From contig CAJFCJ010000001.1 in the NCBI GenBank assembly GCA_904063045.1, forward strand, positions 744,001-808,000: a stretch of DNA of 64,000 nt, read 5' to 3'. The translations under genes and the position numbers were made by a program. The stretch's first letter is position 1; every line of letters begins with the position of its first letter. Positions 37,787 through 54,665 of the stretch are shown here, piece by piece. This DNA is from Dimorphilus gyrociliatus (taxonomy: Eukaryota; Animalia; Annelida). Under the pieces are notes generated by a model. That model saw only the letters and a list, made by a program, of their open reading frames with translations. It ran no database searches and had not been told where the DNA came from.

Positions 37787-40700
37787 CTATTTTTGTGTTT
37801 TAAACTTTGAAGTTAGTTTATCTCTAGTGGCAGATAGCCTAGCAAACACATCTTCACTGCATGTTGAATCACTGTCTTCTAATGAAGCCATTTTTGGTCG
37901 ACTACTACTATCAGAGTCATAATGTTGGATAAGAGTTATAGGACTATCTTGCTTAACTGTTTAAAACAAAAAAAAATGATAACATGATATATTAATTAAA
38001 TGTAAAAGATTATATACAAGATATATTGACACTTACTATCGCTTAGGGGTAAAAGACTCTCAATCGATCCCATATCTCTCTTTTGTTCTTTCTTATCTTT
38101 TTTTGTACACGTTGAGCATTTACAACCAACCCTGTGCTTGCAAGAATGGCTCGGTCGTTTTTCTTTACCACAGTTAGAACAGTATTCTTTTTTCCTATCT
38201 TCGTTTCTGTTAGCGTTATTATTATTTCTAAATTCAAAGGCAAAATCTGTAAGACTTTTCTCCGAATTGGTCTCTAAATCAGGACCAATCGCGTTAATTC
38301 TCTTTAAAATTTTACTTTCATCAGCAGATCTCTCAAATCCAGACATTTGGGTTTGAAGTCTTGTAATTTCAGACTCTTTTAAAATAAGATCTTGCTTAAC
38401 ATTATCCAACAGTTCGTCTCTATCAGCGATTTGTTTACTAAGACGTTTTATAGATTGTTGAGACGTCTTAAACTTTTGTTCAAGTTTTTCCTTATCAACT
38501 TCTAATTGTGTTATTCGAAGACGATATTGAGTAGCTTGTTTAAGACGAGCCTCTTCCTGATCAGCGTTCTACATTGATAAAAAATGTTGGATAATCTTTT
38601 GAGAAATGATAATATATATACCGTTTTTCTATAAGTATCTTTAATTTCATTAATTTCCTGTTCAACTTCTTTCAGTTTAGCCAACGCTTCATCTCTATCT
38701 TTATGCTAAAAGAGTAACATTTTAAAAGTTATATTAGAAAGAAAAAACTCATGTAATAAGGTTATTTACAAGATTTGCATGAGAATTTTGCGCTTCAGAT
38801 AGTTCTGCTTCTAAACGTCTTATTTCTGATTCCTTAAGCTTTAAGTCCCTTTCAAGGGACTCTATTTTCCTAGAATATTGTGAGGTTTCTTCGTTTCTCT
38901 TCTGTTTGATAAATCAACAAAGTAAATATGAAACATAAGTAGTTAAAATTGATATAAGAATTCGTCTTATAAAATACATACATTTAAACCCAATTTTTTA
39001 CTTTTAATCTCATCTTTTAATTTCTTATTTTCCATTTCCAAATCTAATATTTTCGAATTTAGATCACCTTGTAATTTTCTATTTTCGTGCAGTTGTTCAT
39101 TCAAACTTATTGACGATTTTCTAACTTCGTCAAGAGCTTTTGTCAATTTTTCTACTTGATTTAATAAATCCTTTTCTCTTTCATTCATTCTTCCAAGTTC
39201 ATTTTGAACCTTACTTTCTGCTATATTAAATTTTTTAAAATCTAATTTTAATTGATTCAGTTCCATATTCTTTTCTTCAAGTTCACGTTTAGTTTCATTC
39301 AGTTCATGAACATAGTTATTACTATTTAATTCGGTTTTCGATAGAGAATTTTTCAATCTACTTAGCTATTTATAATTTAAATAAAAAGGATTAAAGAGTA
39401 TAGTCACTAATTGATAAGATGAAAACTTACTTCTTTTGACTTCTGTTCTGAGTCAAGTATGGCTTTTCTCATTCCATCTTCGAGTTGTGAGGCCCTTTGC
39501 TGTAGGTTCTCCTTATGATGTCTCAGCCCAGCTTCGAGTTGTGATATCTTTGATTAAAAACAATAAATTTTTAATGTATATAAGCTGGCTTCTTATTTAT
39601 TAATAAAGTACAAACTTCTTCTGCTCTTCTAAGTAGTTCTCCTTGTCTCTCCTTTAAGTCATTTTCCATTGAGATACATTCTCTCTCAAGACTTCTATTT
39701 TCATCTTGAAGACGTCTTATTATTTTTTTCTGATGGTCAATAGTTTTCTCCCTTTCTTCCAACTTATTTTCCCATCTTTCAATTTTCATACCATTTTCAG
39801 TAAATTCAGCTTTTACTTTGTTAAGGTCATTACTTTTTAAGAGGTAATTCTCCTCTGTGCGTTTTAACCTGTCTTCTTTTTCTCTGAGGGCATTTAATAA
39901 CTTTTCATTACTCTCATCTTTATCCTTTAAATGATCTTTAAGAGAGTTAATTTCTGATTTCGATGAAATAATAATCCCCTCCATCTCTGCTATACGATCC
40001 TTTAACCTCTCAGAGTCATCCCTCTCGGCAACAAGCTGTTCTCCAGCTTCTTTCAACTCTTGCTCTAATCGACCTTGACAATCTTCCAGAAAAGAAACCT
40101 TCTTGAATAATTCTTGAACTTCTGCAGAATATTCCTCGGATTTTGCTCTCATGGCTTCATCCTCTATTTCGTGTAATTTCAAGCGTAATTTATTTATCTC
40201 AAGCTCCAATCCTTCTATTTTATTATTGGATTTTCTTTTAACAATTTCTAATTCAGATTGATGTCTGTCTTTTAGACGCTCCATTTCATCCACTTGAAGA
40301 TCAATGTTTTTTTCATATGATAATATTTTACTTTCGATATCCTTCATTTCATTGATATTTTCATCCCTTTCTCTTTTTAATCTCCTTATAGTTTCATCTT
40401 TCTTTTCCAACTGAACTTCGTATTCATTTCTAATCTTTGACAAACTATCTTCCCTTGATAATACTTCTTCTCTGATGGCAGTAACGGATCTTTCTAAAAT
40501 TTCTCTCTGCTCGTCACATTTTTTAAGAGAGTTTTGAAGAATATCAATATTTCTTTGCAATTCAGCACATTGCTCTGAATGTAAATTCTTCATCATTGAC
40601 ATTTTTGAATTTGCTTCATCAATTCTTTCATCCTTTTCCGCACAAAGTAATAAAGTACTTTTTATTTGCTGTTCAAGATCGCTGACACGTCGATTAGTTC

Positions 40701-42759
40701 TGTGAAGTTCAGTTACTTTTGTTTCAAAGTCACTTTCCAAAGTTTTAAAATTATTAGCTAGAAACTGTCTTTCATTTTTAGACTTTTCAAGAGTTTTCTT
40801 TAAGTTATCAATTAATTCTTCTCGTTTTCCTAATTCATTTTCCAAAGAGCTAGAATGATCTTCTATTTTAGTAAGTTTTTCCAAAAAAGTATTGAGTTCC
40901 TCTGACTTTCTTCGATTTATATCCGTTTGTTCTTCGTATAGGCTTTTTAGCTTTTCTTTTTCAGAAATTGCTTTAAAAAAGTATAAGAAAACACTTGTAA
41001 ATATGTTTCAAATCAATAAACAATCAGAATTAAATGTCATATTTAAATATTTAAATATTTAATAATATCTTCTTACTGTCTTTTTGTTTAACCATCAGCG
41101 CTTGAACTTCTTCATTAAGTCTATCAATCATATCTGCTTGTTCAGCGTAAGTCCTTGTATTCTCTCTCCATTTTTTAATTTCTTTATTTCTCCTGTCCAA
41201 TTCGTGGCTGAAATGCGATTTTGTGTATATTGTAAGGACTGAATGAGCTGATCTAAGTAAACTCTCACCGAATAGATTTTATTAGTGTCAGAACGTCAAT
41301 TTCTTCGTTTGAACTCACAAATTCCATATAGGATCCATCGTAATTGGGTTTAGGTGAACTTGTTCTTGGACGGATATTTCGGGTAAAATCTTTTACAGTT
41401 TCATGAATAGAAGAATACAATTCATTCATTTGCAGTTCAAGATTTTCTATATGATTTTGTAAATCAACAATTTTTCTGTCATATTCAATTTCTTGACGAT
41501 CTAAATCTTCTTTTAATTGATCTCTGTCTGCTTGAATTTCTTGATTGGATCGAAGTTGTGTTTCCAAACAATCTATTCAAAATAATTACAATACAAGTGA
41601 CTTTCAATAACGGTTAAAAACTTAACCTACCTATTATGTCCGACTGACCGTTTAATAAGTCATTTACCTCGATCAACTGAACTTCAAATTTACCCTTTTG
41701 TTCTTCAGTCTCCTCTAATTTATTAACTAATGATCTTTTAAAATAAATAATTAACTTTTAAAATATGATGAAAAAAATTTGTCCTACGAGAATCTGTCTT
41801 TATAATCATCTAATTCATCCTTCAATCTGCAATTAGTTTGTTCAAGGCCACTTTTAGCTACAAGGGTACTTTCGTATTTGGTTTGTAGCTTCCTTTTTGA
41901 TTCCATCAGCTGTTTAGTAATCAAATGATTGTATGTTTAAATATTATTATCTTGTAAAAACCTTTTCGATAGTATCATCCTTTTCCTTCTTTATTCCCGT
42001 AAATGTCGATTCGAATTCCTTGACTTTAATAATAGCACCTTCTCTTTCGGCAGCCATCTGTTGATTACACCTTTTCTGTTCTGCAAGTTCATATCTCAAT
42101 CTAATCATATCTTCTTCAGCTTCTTTTAGAGAATTCTGAGCAAGAATAAGCTCCTTTTCCGATCGTTCTAGACACTCTGTTTTTTCTTCGTAAACCTCGT
42201 TCTCTTTCTTCAATCTTAACGATAGTTGTTCCATCTCTTTTGTAAGGACCACTTTCTAATGAATTAAGCAATAATAGAAATTATTGAACAATTGATATAA
42301 AATCTGTAAACAAACATCAGCTTTGATTTGACAAACTCTGTCGGTGGTATCTTCCAGTTGGAGCATTAGCTTATGATTCTGCTCCACTAAACGATCATTT
42401 TCAGATTGTATTCTTTCCAAGTGTTTCTTTGCTCTTTCGAGCTCATAACTTGTTCGTTTACTGGATTGCTGTTGGAGTTAATATTATTGAATAATTATTA
42501 AATCAACTAGCATAGTTTTTTACACACTTCCTTGAGTGATAGGGTTTCTTTTTTGAAAAACAACACTTACACTATTTGAACTTGTATCATTTATTGCAAG
42601 ATGATGTCCATCCGGAGCCTGCCGAACAGAATTTGAGCTGTTTGATCCCCCAAAATCATTAGATCTATCAGATAAATGCAAATCCTGTAAACTTCGCTTG
42701 GTTTTTTCCAATTTTTGTTTAATTGATTGAACATTTTTAAATATCGTATCTTCCTCCAT
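37787..42759 (-). CDS. Long coiled-coil protein (roughly 1200+ aa, about 14 exons) with a C-terminal Cys/His cluster; possibly centriolar (CEP128-like N-terminus)
   Basis: Successive E/K/L-rich heptad exons with GT-AG ends. N-terminus NVQSIKQKLEKTKRSL resembles the CEP128 N-terminal helix by recall. Last exon ends RDKLTSKFKTQK* (TAG 37787-37789). Orthology is uncertain. Confidence 0.75.
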
Positions 42760-43322: not shown

Positions 43323-44902
43323 TTATGCAAAGTTATCTTTATCACCATAAACATAAAAATCTTTTAGAAGGTTTGTTTTAGTCAGACATATATCTTCTTC
43401 AACATTTCCATCAGCCTCTTCAACTGAATCACTAAATGTCTTAGTTGCTTCCTTTACAGCATTCTTAACTTTCTCAATGATATACTTTAATGGTTTTACG
43501 TTGAAATATGACATCAACCCTGCACATAGTATTCTCGCAAAGATACTTCCATCGCCGCTCGACCACTTTTTGGGAACTAGAATTAATATTTGTAAGTGTT
43601 AAAATTGAAGAGAATGTCCTTAAGTAAAGACTTACAATTAACTTTATGATAAATTAACATGGAATTTTTAGGAATCTCGATTAAATTTTTTTTTCTTGCA
43701 AGCTGAGTTTCACTTAAAGATACAGTATGGACTCCTTTTGTGATTCCTCGGACAGTTCTCTCTGATATTTAAATAGTGTTTATATTCCACAAAATTTGTA
43801 CATGAAATTATCTTTACCTTTTACATTCGGATAGAGCAGAAAGATAAAAATCTTTGGAATATTAACGATATGATTTTCTGAAAATTTATCATAAAATTCT
43901 CGAAAACTCATAGTTGTATCATTGGGTGGAATTGAGAATCCATCTTCTGTTTCCTTAGCGTGAACAACAATAACTGCCGCTGACGAATATTTCCATATCT
44001 GACGAAGCTTACTTAATTTTCCCTGATAAATGAATAAAGATACTTTTACTTATTGAATATACACTAATGTTAAAGATCGTACGATTATTTCATTTTCGCT
44101 CTGGCATACTGTTACTTGACAGCCGAGAGCAGTTAAAACGTCGTCTAACATGCTTCCATCATGTGAATCTTTAACGCAATCTATAATGAGACCTGATCCA
44201 TTTTTCAAATGATATGCCTTAAATGGGAAAAAAACCGATTAAAATATGTTAATAATATACTGTTTTTTTTTTGATGTGAACAGTTACCTTATCCAAGTCA
44301 ATATCTTCATGAATTTTAGAACTTCTATCAATCTGATCAATATTAATTGATGATGGTATTGTTTTTTCATACACTTAAGAAAAAGAACATAGTCTTCTGA
44401 AAAACTTTCAAAGATATTATACTGTATATTTACCGAGTTTTTTAACTGCGTTCATAAATTCAGTATCATGATTCCTTAGTTCACCGTATGGGTAAGGTTC
44501 CCCAGGTCTGAGGGCTTTGTGTGCTTGTCGTGCCAATACTGGATCTAGCATCTCAGCCAAATCAGACTGATTTGAATCGATTAAAGCTCTAAAAAGTGCG
44601 TTCCAGGCTCTGGATCCTGACTTTTGAAGCTGCATCCAAAATGCTGAATTTTTTTCATATGAGGTGGATTTTTTCTGGAATAGAAAACATTCTAATTAGT
44701 GAAAAATGACCTTCTATTCACTTTCTTTTCAATTTGTAACAACAGTGTTAATTGAAATGGTGTGAACCTGAATGATCTCTAACATTTCCAAACTGAAAAT
44801 GTTTTCTGCTAGAAAACAGTCAAGAAACAATCCATCAGTAGACAAATCTCTATTTAAGCGAACCATATTCTTTCTTATCTTGTCTCTATGTTCTTTTTCC
44901 AT
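43323..44902 (-). CDS. CARD + catalytically dead caspase-fold protein, copy A (7 exons, intact frame)
   Basis: CARD: MEKEHRDKIRKNMVRLNRDL..AWNALFRALIDSNQSDLAEML. p20-like: GLIID..DGSMLDDVLTALGCQVTV, AVIVVHA, PKIFIFLLYPN. p10-like: IPKNSMLIYH, WSSGDGSIFARILC, TNLLKDFYV. Stop at 43323-43325. Confidence 0.88.
43811..44224. repeat. 414-bp duplicated block, copy 1 (two exons plus a 60-bp intron)
   Basis: Base-by-base comparison with 45703-46116: constant offset 1892, no indels, 8 mismatches. Confidence 0.97.
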
Positions 44903-44977
44903 GATGTTGTCAACTTTCTTTTTTGCTTGTAGAAACAAGGATCTTCAATCTATTTACCTATTTATCGCTCAATAAGG

Positions 44978-44989
44978 CAGAGGGCACTA
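44978..44989 (+). promoter_or_regulatory. CTCF-like motif CAGAGGGCACTA between the two pseudocaspase genes
   Basis: 76 bp upstream of the copy A ATG; 12-nt match to the CTCF core. Confidence 0.4.
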
Positions 44990-45220
44990 TTTTTTAAAAA
45001 GATGTTTTCGTATTAACTTAATATTTTAAAGTTCCACTATTGTACAGAATTTGAACTTATAAGTGAACAAGTCCATGTTCAATTCACAAATTATTCTATT
45101 TAATCAAAATACCAAACTGTTATATGATCTAATACGTAATATAAAAATATCAGATATGTTATGAAACGCAAATTCAATATAGCACTATGAAATTATTCAG
45201 GTCTGTATTCAAATATGGAT

Positions 45221-47077
45221 TCATGGTTTGGAGTTACTTTTGAAAGAATACATGTAAAAGTTCTTGCAAAGGTTTGATTCCACAAGGCATATTTTATCTT
45301 TAGAAATTTCTTGTTTTCCCTTCTCACTTGTACTTTTGACACTTGAAGGAGTATTATCATATTCATTTTTCAGTTTCATCATAGTAGCATTGACTTTTTC
45401 AATTATATCTGGATGTATTGGTTTTTCGTAGCAATATGCCATTAATCCAGAAATAAGTACTTTTGTAAAGAGGCACACTTGGTTATCTTCGTATTGTTTT
45501 TGAACTGGTAGTAATTTTTAATAGTATAAAAGTTGATTAGAATGTTATCATATAAAATGTTACCCCTTATCTTGTGACAAATTACCATACTGTTTTTGGG
45601 AATATTAGTGACTTTACTAGTATTCTCTGTTGTTTTAGCTGACGCTTTTAATTAAGTAACGTTTACTACTAATATATTCAATGTGGCTTTTAAACAAAAT
45701 CTTCTTTACCTTTTACATTCGGATAGAGCAGAAAGATAAAAATCTTTGGAATATTAACGATATGATTTTCTGAAAATTTATCATAAAATTCTCGAAAACT
45801 CATAGTTGTATCATTGGGTGAAATTGAGAATCCATCTTCTGTTTCCTTAGCGTGAACAACAATAACTGCCGCTGACGAATATTTCCATATCTGACAAAGA
45901 ATACTTAATTTTCCCTGATAAATGAATAAAGATACTTTTACTTATTGAATATACACTAATGTTAAAGATCGTACGATTATTTCATTTTCGCTCTGGCATA
46001 CTGTTACTTGACAGCCGAGAGCAGTTAAAACGTCGTCTAACATGCTTCCATCATATGAATCTTTAACGCAATCTATAATGAGACCTGGTCCATTTTTCAA
46101 ATAGTATGCCTTAAATTGTGACAAATGATTAAAATATATTAATAATATACTGTTTTAGATAACGGTTACTCTCTCTGAATTGACATCTTCACAAACTTCA
46201 AACGTTGAATCAATCTGTATGTCCTCAAACGGTTTCTTTTCAAGAACTTAAGGAGAAAATAGAGAAAATTTTTTAAATAGCAGCAAGAGTATCAATTATT
46301 TACCATGGTCTCGTATCATATCATCGAAAACACTGTCAGTATTCTTCTCTTCATCAAAAGGGTATGTTTCATTTTCAAAAATTTCAGAAAAAATTTCTTT
46401 TGCAAATTTTCTATCTAAATAGTCCGCAATAGCCCCCTGTTGAGTTTCAAATAAAGCTATGAAAAGTACTTTCCAGGCTTGTTCTCCAGATGTTTGAATA
46501 TCCATCCAAACTCTGAAGTTCTTCTCATAATCCGAGTAATTGGACTGAAGGCAAAAAACTAAATAAATACTATTTTATTGAAGCTATATGCAACATCTTT
46601 ATTGATATAATTAATGAAAAAGCTTAAAAGTTAACTATGATTGATTTACTTTTCTGCTTTCATTTCAGAAGTAAAAAAAGCTTGTAAATGAATAAGGAAA
46701 CTACTATATGTAACGAGAGTCTAATCTAATATATTACAGTCTTCAATCACTATACTTATCCTGCCTGGAGTGTATCATCGCTCATACGATAAGCTTTTTT
46801 AATAGCTATGATACATTTATTAGTCTTTAAAGAAATCGATATTTTATCAATACTTTCTTTAAACTAACAATACTGAAAAATAAATTTTAAAAAATGGAAA
46901 CGTTAACATAGTCATTACCCCCAAAAATTCTATACATACTATATTTAATTTTTCCTCATAATCTTCTGAAAAAATATCTGTCTGAATAAGCTTTCCCATA
47001 AACAATGCATCAACCTTCAAATTCTTGGTTAAATGAACCAAGTTCTTTCTAATTTTATATTTTTGATTATCATTCAT
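45221..47077 (-). CDS. CARD + catalytically dead caspase-fold protein, copy B (7 exons, intact frame)
   Basis: CARD: MNDNQKYKIRKNLVHLTKNL..AWKVLFIALFETQQGAIADYL. Same p20-like block with VVHA and PKIFIFLLYPN. p10-like: IPKNSMVICH, CLFTKVLISGL, SNLCKNFYM. Stop at 45221-45223. Confidence 0.88.
45703..46116. repeat. 414-bp duplicated block, copy 2
   Basis: 98% identical to 43811-44224, including an identical intron. Confidence 0.97.
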
Positions 47078-47843: not shown

Positions 47844-49949
<2,106 letters not shown>

Positions 49950-53231: not shown

Positions 53232-54665
53232 ATGAATGCGGTGGTGTCCTTGATGAAATATAAATCGTTACTTGTAACGCCTATAAGAAAGATGGCAGGG
53301 CATAATAAATGGTCAAATATTAAGCACATAAAAGCTGCAAAAGATTCTAAAAAAGCTGCAATATCAATGAAAATCATGCAAAAAATGCGTTTAGCAATAA
53401 AAGGTAGGTCAAATCTAAATAAGTTATTTATTAAAAGGAACAATAAAGTGCTAATTTTATAGAGGGAGGTAGTCATAAGCCAGAGTTAAATTCCAGATTA
53501 GCACGACTTGTGGACGAAGCCCGATCCAACAATATTCCTATGTCATCTGTTGAAAATGTTTTAAAATCAGCCGTAAGTTCTGCTATTGCTATATTTAGAG
53601 GATGTTAAATATTTATGAATATGTAATGTATTATAAATATGCATATTAGTAAGGTCATGTATTGTAATACCTAAAGGAAAAAAATAAAAATCAAGGTACA
53701 CATTTGTTTGTGGAAGGAAAAGGCCCAGGTGGCTGTATGATGATTGTTGAAGTTTTTTCTGATAATCCTAGACGAACTCGTCAAGAATTGAGTGCTGCTT
53801 TTAGAAAATCTGGGTAAAATATGAAAAGAAATATCTCCCCCTTCTAAAGTATACAAAAGATTATTTCTTTTAGGGGCGCCATTGGAGATTCAGGAACGGC
53901 GTCTCACGCCTACAATTACAAAGGAATTGTGAATGTAAGGCCTTTTTAGATTTCCAAAGTCTATTTTCACTTAATTAGTTTTACGTCAATGTCAGATATT
54001 GAAAGAAGGTTGCTCTCTTAACGCTGACGAAGCAACTGAATTAGCTATAGAATGCGAAGCGGAGGATGTATCGGAAACTGTTGATGACAATGGTAGAGAG
54101 GTGTGGCAAGTATGTATCTAATCGATTGCCTTACTTCTACTGAGAAAAGTCTTAAAAACCTATTTCCCTAGATCTATATATACAGTATATACATTATATA
54201 TCAATAGTTTATGCCAACATACTTTTTATTAAGTTATACACTTAATAGCTATTCATAATTAAGCTTACAAGGAATCATGTGACTTAACAATACGCTATAT
54301 GACTATTATTAAAAAAAAATCTACCTATATTCATATACATTGGATTTATGAAGGCCGTTCTATAAAAGCTTTTGTAGCCTAGTAGTCTGGATCTAAGTTG
54401 ATTTTTCCTAAGTCACCATGACTGCTCGTAAGAGAAATAATACTCGTCTTTTTTTCAGTTTATAACCGAAAGAAAAGATGTTCATAAAGTAAAGTCAGAA
54501 TTAGAAAAGAGAAGCTATAAATCAACTGAAGCTCGATTTGCCTACATACCAGAACTTTTTGTTGAGCTTGACGAACCGGTCTTAGCGGCCGCCATATCGT
54601 TATGCAATTATGCAGATCAAATGTCCGACGTAATAAGGGTGTACGATAATATAAAAATACAATGA
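53232..54665 (+). CDS. TACO1: Translational activator of cytochrome c oxidase 1 (YebC/TACO1), mitochondrial, 6 exons
   Basis: Presequence followed by MAGHNKWSNIKHIK; EGKGPGGC; ATELAIECEAEDV; AYIPELFVEL; DVIRVYDNI. Stop TGA at 54663-54665. Confidence 0.95.

Follow-up and report, generated by a model that had tools for sequence, protein, structure and literature searches.

Do two neighbouring genes of the annelid Dimorphilus gyrociliatus, each joining a CARD to a caspase-like body with tyrosine at the position of the catalytic cysteine, encode regulators of cell death, and by what route might such dead caspases act? The genes, here called A and B, lie on the minus strand at positions 43323-47077 of a 64,000-nucleotide stretch of contig CAJFCJ010000001.1 (assembly GCA_904063045.1; contig positions 744,001 to 808,000), which is referred to below as the window and to which all coordinates apply. 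A reading of the letters alone (the original prediction) had described two intact seven-exon genes, each with a CARD, a p20-like and a p10-like part, and had suggested a CARD-based analogue of c-FLIP. The present analysis recovers both the gene structures and the domains, and we conclude that A and B are adjacent, tandemly duplicated CARD-pseudocaspases that probably regulate cell death rather than execute it. Few pseudocaspases are known, c-FLIP being the only well-understood one; a CARD pair in a small laboratory annelid, expressed, compact in gene structure, and with no detectable relatives, would provide a second, independent case in which to ask how dead caspases tune live ones. The pair would likewise bear on the control of initiator caspases in lophotrochozoans, a group reported to be without Apaf-1. 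Proteins of this kind have been described or suggested in mammals, insects, nematodes, and mussels.

Two transcribed genes merged in the public annotation

The spliced frames of both genes are open, and every one of their 12 introns begins with GT and ends with AG, with matching phases between the two copies and lengths of 56-93 nucleotides, apart from intron 1 of B, which has 395. Since the expected probability of an open frame of 390 codons is about 8e-13 at the observed stop frequency of 0.069 per codon (six frames; window of 30.5% G+C), chance as the source of these frames is excluded. No third copy was found by tblastn within the window.

Evidence from RNA comes from the assembled contigs of one public run of 2017, belonging to one study and being the only public run that contains this stretch; such contigs cannot rank expression. 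The run holds 0.58 of the words sampled from the stretch, near the exonic share, and it is evidently RNA-derived because its contigs skip introns. Both A and B are transcribed and spliced: as the predicted gene structures required, nine of the 12 introns are joined base-exactly at the expected sites, all reading CT..AC on the plus strand, and these comprise all six introns of B (45504/45564, 45644/45710, 45913/45974, 46108/46169, 46246/46304, and 46544/46940) and introns 6, 5, and 1 of A (43576/43636, 43761/43818, and 44674/44768). Contig depths for both genes are in the hundreds, a poor measure of expression.

Around intron 1 of B, the contigs also contain a second joint, 46872/46940 (67 nucleotides skipped), and a contig that runs unspliced across 46515-46872. 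An isoform that retained most of this intron would meet a stop two codons past exon 1 (Tyr-Cys-stop) and encode only half a CARD, so that it probably represents an unproductive form or an intermediate of processing.

The public protein for the locus (CAD5110809.1, DgyrCDS173, A0A7I8V530; 730 aa) fuses B and A. Its residues 338-730 are an exact match to gene A, and in its B portion it uses another donor after exon 1, which adds the seven residues VCIEFLG, skips exon 6, and joins exon 7 (donor 45333) to the leader of A (acceptor 44926). That the locus is indeed a single gene as annotated, with two CARD-pseudocaspase units in one chain, is very improbable. The deposited joint from donor 45333 to acceptor 44926 is in frame, as one gene would require, but neither this joint nor either of the other two deviating choices is present among the RNA contigs, which carry the rebuilt joints of B against the deposited exon 6 skip and exon 1 donor. 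Moreover, one contig spans exon 7 of B and passes uninterrupted through the 45333 donor and the B stop codon on to 45149, while coverage ends just downstream of an ATTAAA at 45099-45104 on the 3' side of B and is zero over the roughly 130 bp at 44953-45083 between the genes, in a genome that is very compact. The public gene model is wrong, in that two genes have been merged into one 730-aa protein. CAD5110809.1 is not among the entries in the available part of the supplement to Horkan et al. (10.1101/2023.12.11.571055), and the fused model may be one reason why this recent survey of lophotrochozoan caspases, as far as that part extends, omits A and B.

Domain architecture

Database searches used gene A in the form of residues 338-730 of CAD5110809.1, whereas B was examined by exon pieces and by comparison with A. 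The N-terminal module of A is a CARD (Pfam PF00619, residues 7-88), scoring 37.1 bits against a cut-off of 23.9 (E 3.1e-9). Its best sequence matches in the PDB are the CARDs of CED-3 and caspase-9 (E of about 0.01-0.03 for those of caspase-9), and Foldseek likewise aligns it with the caspase-9 CARD at a TM-score of 0.75 and 28-29% identity; the CARD of A is of the CED-3/caspase-9 type. Exon 1 of B taken alone matches the same Pfam family weakly (13-17 bits, E 0.093), and residues 1-130 of the two proteins match each other by BLASTP with an E of 3e-28. The divergence between the CARDs that was originally estimated at about 39% identity is reproduced, at 39.1% over residues 1-92. No DED was matched in A by Pfam, and the prodomain consists of a single CARD. 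Between the CARD and the caspase-like body lies a linker of about 60 residues in both proteins, which in A carries DQID and EDID, the QID being common to A and B. Single exons had also been submitted to Pfam and gave only the weak exon 1 CARD matches, the pieces being too short; they were replaced by the 393-residue query from CAD5110809.1.

The body that follows has a predicted caspase (p20 plus p10) fold, strongly diverged, as judged from several weak and concordant lines of sequence and model evidence. In A, the Peptidase_C14 profile is matched over positions 23-233 of its 233 (18.6-20 bits, E 5.8e-4 to 1.6e-3), and sequence searches of the PDB return CED-3 (8jol_C, E 9.5e-4) together with many caspase-3 p12 chains (E 0.03-0.3). 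The ESM Atlas clusters that lie nearest by features are Peptidase_C14 in 39 of 40 cases, and the Atlas model of CAD5110809.1 residues 490-730 reaches TM-scores of 0.68-0.72 with clusters of CFLAR, caspase-3, caspase-8, and caspase-1. Submitted to Foldseek, the full AlphaFold2 model retrieves procaspase-7, procaspase-1, the protease-like domain of c-FLIP(L) (3h13), CED-3, and caspase-9. The elements of this low-confidence model follow as beta1-alpha1-beta2-alpha2-beta3-hairpin-alpha3-beta4, then beta5 and two helices, an order that we take to be that of caspases.

Catalytic and substrate-binding residues

The QACxG motif is absent from both A and B, where the sequence reads LLYPN with tyrosine at the cysteine position. 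The two TAT codons named in the original prediction (43831-43833 and 45723-45725) are confirmed in the sequence, and the register was obtained from the weak alignment of A with CED-3, which ends with 'ipkif' on 'kpkiv' and which, extended by five more residues by hand, places Tyr263 on the catalytic Cys. The histidine said to be retained in VVHA is present in both proteins; its assignment is less direct, in that the HMMER register for A lies two residues off the CED-3 His and equivalence needs a small gap shift. His220 of A sits in a strand (215-224) predicted by AlphaFold2 in a low-confidence model, and it probably corresponds to the catalytic His. The next residue is Ala instead of the oxyanion-hole Gly of the SHG motif.

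In the p10-like part, the absence of the Arg of the WR pair, also proposed originally, holds for both copies: in A, a one-residue gap in the HMMER alignment falls exactly opposite the S1 Arg of caspase-3 'SWRN', and in B there is no Trp-Arg pair in the aligned stretch. Loop L1, between beta1 and helix 1, is presumably about ten residues shorter than that of caspase-3 and without its Arg, as judged by a comparison by eye rather than by a tool alignment. Neither protein has an Asp in its intersubunit linker. Because Tyr stands for Cys and Ala for the oxyanion Gly, and because the p10 part lacks its S1 Arg, the fold, to judge from these residues, is unable to act as an Asp-specific cysteine protease in either protein.

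One structural assignment has to be revised. The segment NLLKDFYV in A and NLCKNFYM in B, previously taken for the C-terminal dimer strand, aligns instead with the C-terminal tail of caspase-3, 'LTKELYFY'. The interface strand beta6 is, as we take it, the preceding 'ICL..' segment, which is common to A and B.

Evolution of the gene pair

The two copies are unevenly related. A tract of 462 nucleotides, which runs from the 3' part of intron 3 to the first bases of intron 5, is 96.1% identical between them by blastn, intron 4 being 100% identical, and similarity collapses outside it. Recent, exon-bounded gene conversion has held the p20 cores at about 95% identity, whereas the CARDs and the p10 parts retain only 35-39% identity. 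Because the shared Tyr lies inside this tract, it counts as one event and not as independent evidence from two genes. The non-catalytic state is nevertheless probably old rather than a recent accident, with the open frames maintained since, because the p10 Arg is missing in both copies outside the tract, in deeply diverged sequence.

Synonymous sites outside the tract are saturated. The proportion of non-synonymous differences per site (pN) stays below that of synonymous ones (pS), at 0.40 versus 0.62 in the CARD and 0.42 versus 0.70 in the p10 part, which indicates purifying selection there, the ratio itself being unreliable. The amino-acid changes within the tract are H157Y, S162P, H173Y, K204I (two substitutions), R206C, and P231S, mostly by C/T transitions.

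Comparison with known pseudocaspases

One of the closest known proteins is c-FLIP(L), in which R315 and Y360 take the place of His and Cys (PMC7586951), so that the Cys-to-Tyr parallel drawn in the original prediction is sound, and which acts on caspase-8 (PMC7586951). Like A and B, c-FLIP(L)/CFLAR combines an N-terminal death-fold module with a caspase-like p20 plus p10 body bearing Tyr at the Cys position, and it too goes back to a tandem duplication among caspase-type genes; A has some of its best structural matches in CFLAR clusters and 3h13. The differences are equally clear: A and B have a single CARD instead of two tandem DEDs, apparently keep His where FLIP has Arg315, have an intersubunit linker without Asp, and show no detectable sequence relationship to c-FLIP(L) beyond the common fold.

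Among spiralians, Romero et al. (2011) described in Mytilus galloprovincialis a CARD 'caspase-2' (Mg2-like) that lacks QACRG, His237, Gly238, and Cys285, and suggested that its role may be to regulate without proteolysis, in the manner of CLARP (c-FLIP) (PMC3037946). Vogeler et al. (PMC7836458) reported other caspase-2-like genes of bivalves in which the His or the Cys is lacking. The mussel protein resembles A and B in being spiralian, in its CARD prodomain, and in the loss of QACRG and of the catalytic dyad, but it belongs to another phylum and its P20 was not detectable by its authors. No mollusc relative of A or B emerged from the word-based searches.

COP/CARD16, INCA/CARD17, and ICEBERG/CARD18 consist of a caspase-related CARD and have been suggested to act as competitors at CARD platforms; unlike A and B, which retain the p20 plus p10 body in full, they are without a protease fold. 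Caspase-12 does combine a CARD with a caspase fold, as A and B do, and keeps its catalytic Cys; unlike them, it is a member of the inflammatory caspase cluster of vertebrates. A review recommends the term 'pseudocaspase' for this CARD protein with a protease fold, which may modulate inflammatory caspases, and attributes the inactivity of human read-through caspase-12 to a mutated SHG box (PMC11121540).

CSP-2 and CSP-3 of C. elegans and a decoy caspase of Aedes are, like A and B, catalytically dead copies of caspases produced by gene duplication. The Aedes decoy is CASPS18; to our knowledge, neither the nematode proteins nor the dipteran decoys have a CARD, and CSP-3 corresponds to the small-subunit part only. 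Both nematode proteins are reported to inhibit their live paralogue (PMC3591282, whose authors could not confirm the anti-apoptotic csp-3 phenotype). The Aedes decoy, by contrast, is reported to enhance its paralogue (Bryant et al. 2010, as cited in PMC3141678). The reported or proposed targets are caspase-1 for caspase-12, CED-3 for CSP-3, and the paralogous caspase for the Aedes decoy (PMC11121540, PMC3591282, PMC3141678).

The premise that CARD decoys are without a protease fold, on which the novelty of the pair had been based, is weakened by these comparisons, as caspase-12 (PMC11121540) and the mussel CARD 'caspase-2' (PMC3037946) precede it. The CARD-pseudocaspase architecture is not unprecedented, and a FLIP-like role was already proposed for the mussel protein in 2011. 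A and B are lineage-specific, mis-annotated pseudocaspases with an unusual pattern of gene conversion.

Proposed function and alternative explanations

The explanation that we somewhat favour, by analogy with these proteins, is that A and B are two separate CARD-pseudocaspase genes whose dead protease domain modulates a live caspase. The CARD would recruit the protein either to a CARD platform or straight to a CARD-caspase, where the dead domain would pair with the live caspase domain and modulate its activation; the sequence cannot tell inhibition from enhancement. The CARD caspase reported for D. gyrociliatus is Casp-Y (CAD5125939.1), listed together with a DED caspase (CAD5115032.1) in 10.1101/2023.12.11.571055. 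A more specific version, in which the lineage-specific pair would form a FLIP-like control layer for CARD-caspase activation in an annelid for which no Apaf-1, CRADD, or FADD is reported, with conversion keeping the cores fitted to the same caspase while CARDs and p10 parts diverge for different platforms, is rather doubtful.

Several observations weigh against modulation of a live caspase by A and B. On the structural side, the Peptidase_C14 score of A lies under the Pfam gathering cut-off of 21.4; the AlphaFold2 models are poor (pLDDT 43.8 with the full alignment of A and B, and 38.8 for the caspase domain alone), because the alignment holds A and B only, and they do not resolve the geometry of the active site or the interface; and the p20 part alone and exon 7 of B (p10) alone matched no caspase in the PDB, what they did return being fortuitous hits to ParM and complement C3. 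On the evolutionary side, the exons of the tract differ at eight sites, seven non-synonymous and one synonymous, with no difference in intron 4; this excess is not significant (Fisher P 0.45) and does not indicate that the core is constrained. No relatives of A or B were found in other species, either by an exhaustive HMMER search with exon 5, in which the sole significant protein was CAD5110809.1 and two others (E of about 5e-4 to 9e-4) were unrelated repetitive proteins, or by word-based searches with full A, with the caspase domain of A (E up to 10), and with the alignment of A and B (E up to 10), which need shared 5-residue words and length windows, such that distant caspases escape them by construction. 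As no orthologue was found, cross-species conservation, which normally signals function, lends the reading no support. Transcript evidence is incomplete as well: 43905-44428, containing exons 3-4 and part of exon 5 of A, has no contig coverage in the single run, leaving introns 2-4 uncovered, and the contig over exon 2 ends at 44450, 16 nucleotides short of the donor. Exons 4-5 of A, being near-identical to those of B, may have been collapsed onto B by the assembler. Exon 3 of A is unique sequence and is likewise without contig coverage, which such a collapse does not explain.

The upstream platform raises a further difficulty. APAF-1 is reported absent from molluscs, annelids, and brachiopods (Horkan et al., preprint 10.1101/2023.12.11.571055), and its Suppl. 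Table 1 gives D. gyrociliatus no CARD-caspase, FADD, CRADD, or APAF-1, so that the apoptosome- or PIDDosome-like platform envisaged by the original prediction is weakened. The preprint is inconsistent on one of these points: Suppl. Table 1 has no CARD-caspase for the species, and a later table lists CAD5125939.1 as a CARD Casp-Y.

A different role, possible if less probable than not, is that of scaffolds or adaptors, in which the CARD would nucleate or cap CARD filaments and the dead fold would bind proteins other than caspases, possibly in immunity or stress signalling and not in apoptosis. The scaffolding roles of caspase-8 and MALT1 are comparable cases. The divergence of the CARDs beside cores kept alike is consistent with this role, as are an S1 pocket dismantled further than the killing of catalysis needs and the lack of relatives elsewhere, which is common in fast-evolving immune genes; against it, the beta6/tail dimerisation segment is among the few p10 motifs common to A and B and alignable to caspase-3, and its conservation fits caspase-type pairing. 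Simple degeneration, with A and B as expressed and functionless duplicates in decay, would account for the lost catalytic and S1 residues, the lack of detected orthologues, and the non-significant 7:1 ratio in the converted core, but is quite unlikely: both genes keep some 390 open codons where 6.9% of codons per frame would be stops, all 12 introns have intact splice sites, pN remains below pS in the old, saturated parts, both genes are transcribed and correctly spliced at the depths given above, and the genome is very compact, with only the short uncovered interval between them. A hydrolase with a non-canonical nucleophile or altered specificity deserves next to no credence. The probable retention of the His would suit such an enzyme. 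Against it stand the Tyr in place of the nucleophile, the loss of the S1 Arg from the p10 part, the Ala where the oxyanion-hole Gly is expected, and the parallel of the inactive c-FLIP(L), in which Cys has likewise given way to Tyr (PMC7586951).

Features of the locus and neighbouring genes

Table 1. Positions of the features of genes A and B in the window, and amino-acid identity between the two proteins
Feature	Position	Strand	Length, codon or identity	Basis or remark
Gene A, CARD-pseudocaspase	43323..44902	-	393 aa	Stop-free spliced translation, GT..AG at every intron
Gene A, exons 1-7	44768-44902, 44434-44674, 44288-44373, 44083-44217, 43818-44022, 43636-43761, 43323-43576	-		Exon 7 with stop
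Gene B, CARD-pseudocaspase	45221..47077	-	386 aa	Stop-free spliced translation
Gene B, exons 1-7	46940-47077, 46304-46544, 46170-46246, 45975-46109, 45710-45914, 45564-45644, 45221-45504	-		Exon 7 with stop
CARD of A	44626..44902	-	residues ~1-92	Exon 1 and first part of exon 2, intron 1 inside; Pfam CARD
CARD of B	46496..47077	-		Exon 1 and first part of exon 2, 395-nt intron 1 inside; similarity to A
Tyr263 of A, catalytic Cys position	43831..43833	-	TAT	LLYPN for QACxG; sequence and hand-extended CED-3 register
Tyr261 of B, same position	45723..45725	-	TAT	Inside conversion tract; sequence
His220 of A, candidate catalytic His equivalent	43960..43962	-	CAC	VVHA; sequence
His218 of B	45852..45854	-	CAC	Sequence
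p10-like exon 7 of A	43326..43576	-		'KKW-SSGDGS', then C-terminal 'ICLTKTNLLKDFYVY'; phmmer vs caspase-3 p12, E 0.03-0.1
Gene-conversion tract, copy in A	43805..44266	-		3' part of intron 3, exon 4, intron 4, exon 5, first bases of intron 5; p20 core
Gene-conversion tract, copy in B	45697..46156	-		blastn counterpart of the copy in A
Identity of A and B, overall			53%	
Identity of A and B, CARD			39%	
Identity of A and B, linker			29%	
Identity of A and B, p20 core			95%	
Identity of A and B, p10 part			35%	

The genes around the pair, none of which is related to cell death, are known from public gene calls with approximate limits. Directly downstream of A lies a gene for a 1356-aa protein with a faint match to CCDC39 (37787-42759, minus strand), directly upstream of B a nuclear receptor with zf-C4 and Hormone_recep domains (47844-49949, minus strand), and at 53232-54665 on the plus strand a gene of the TACO1/YebC type.

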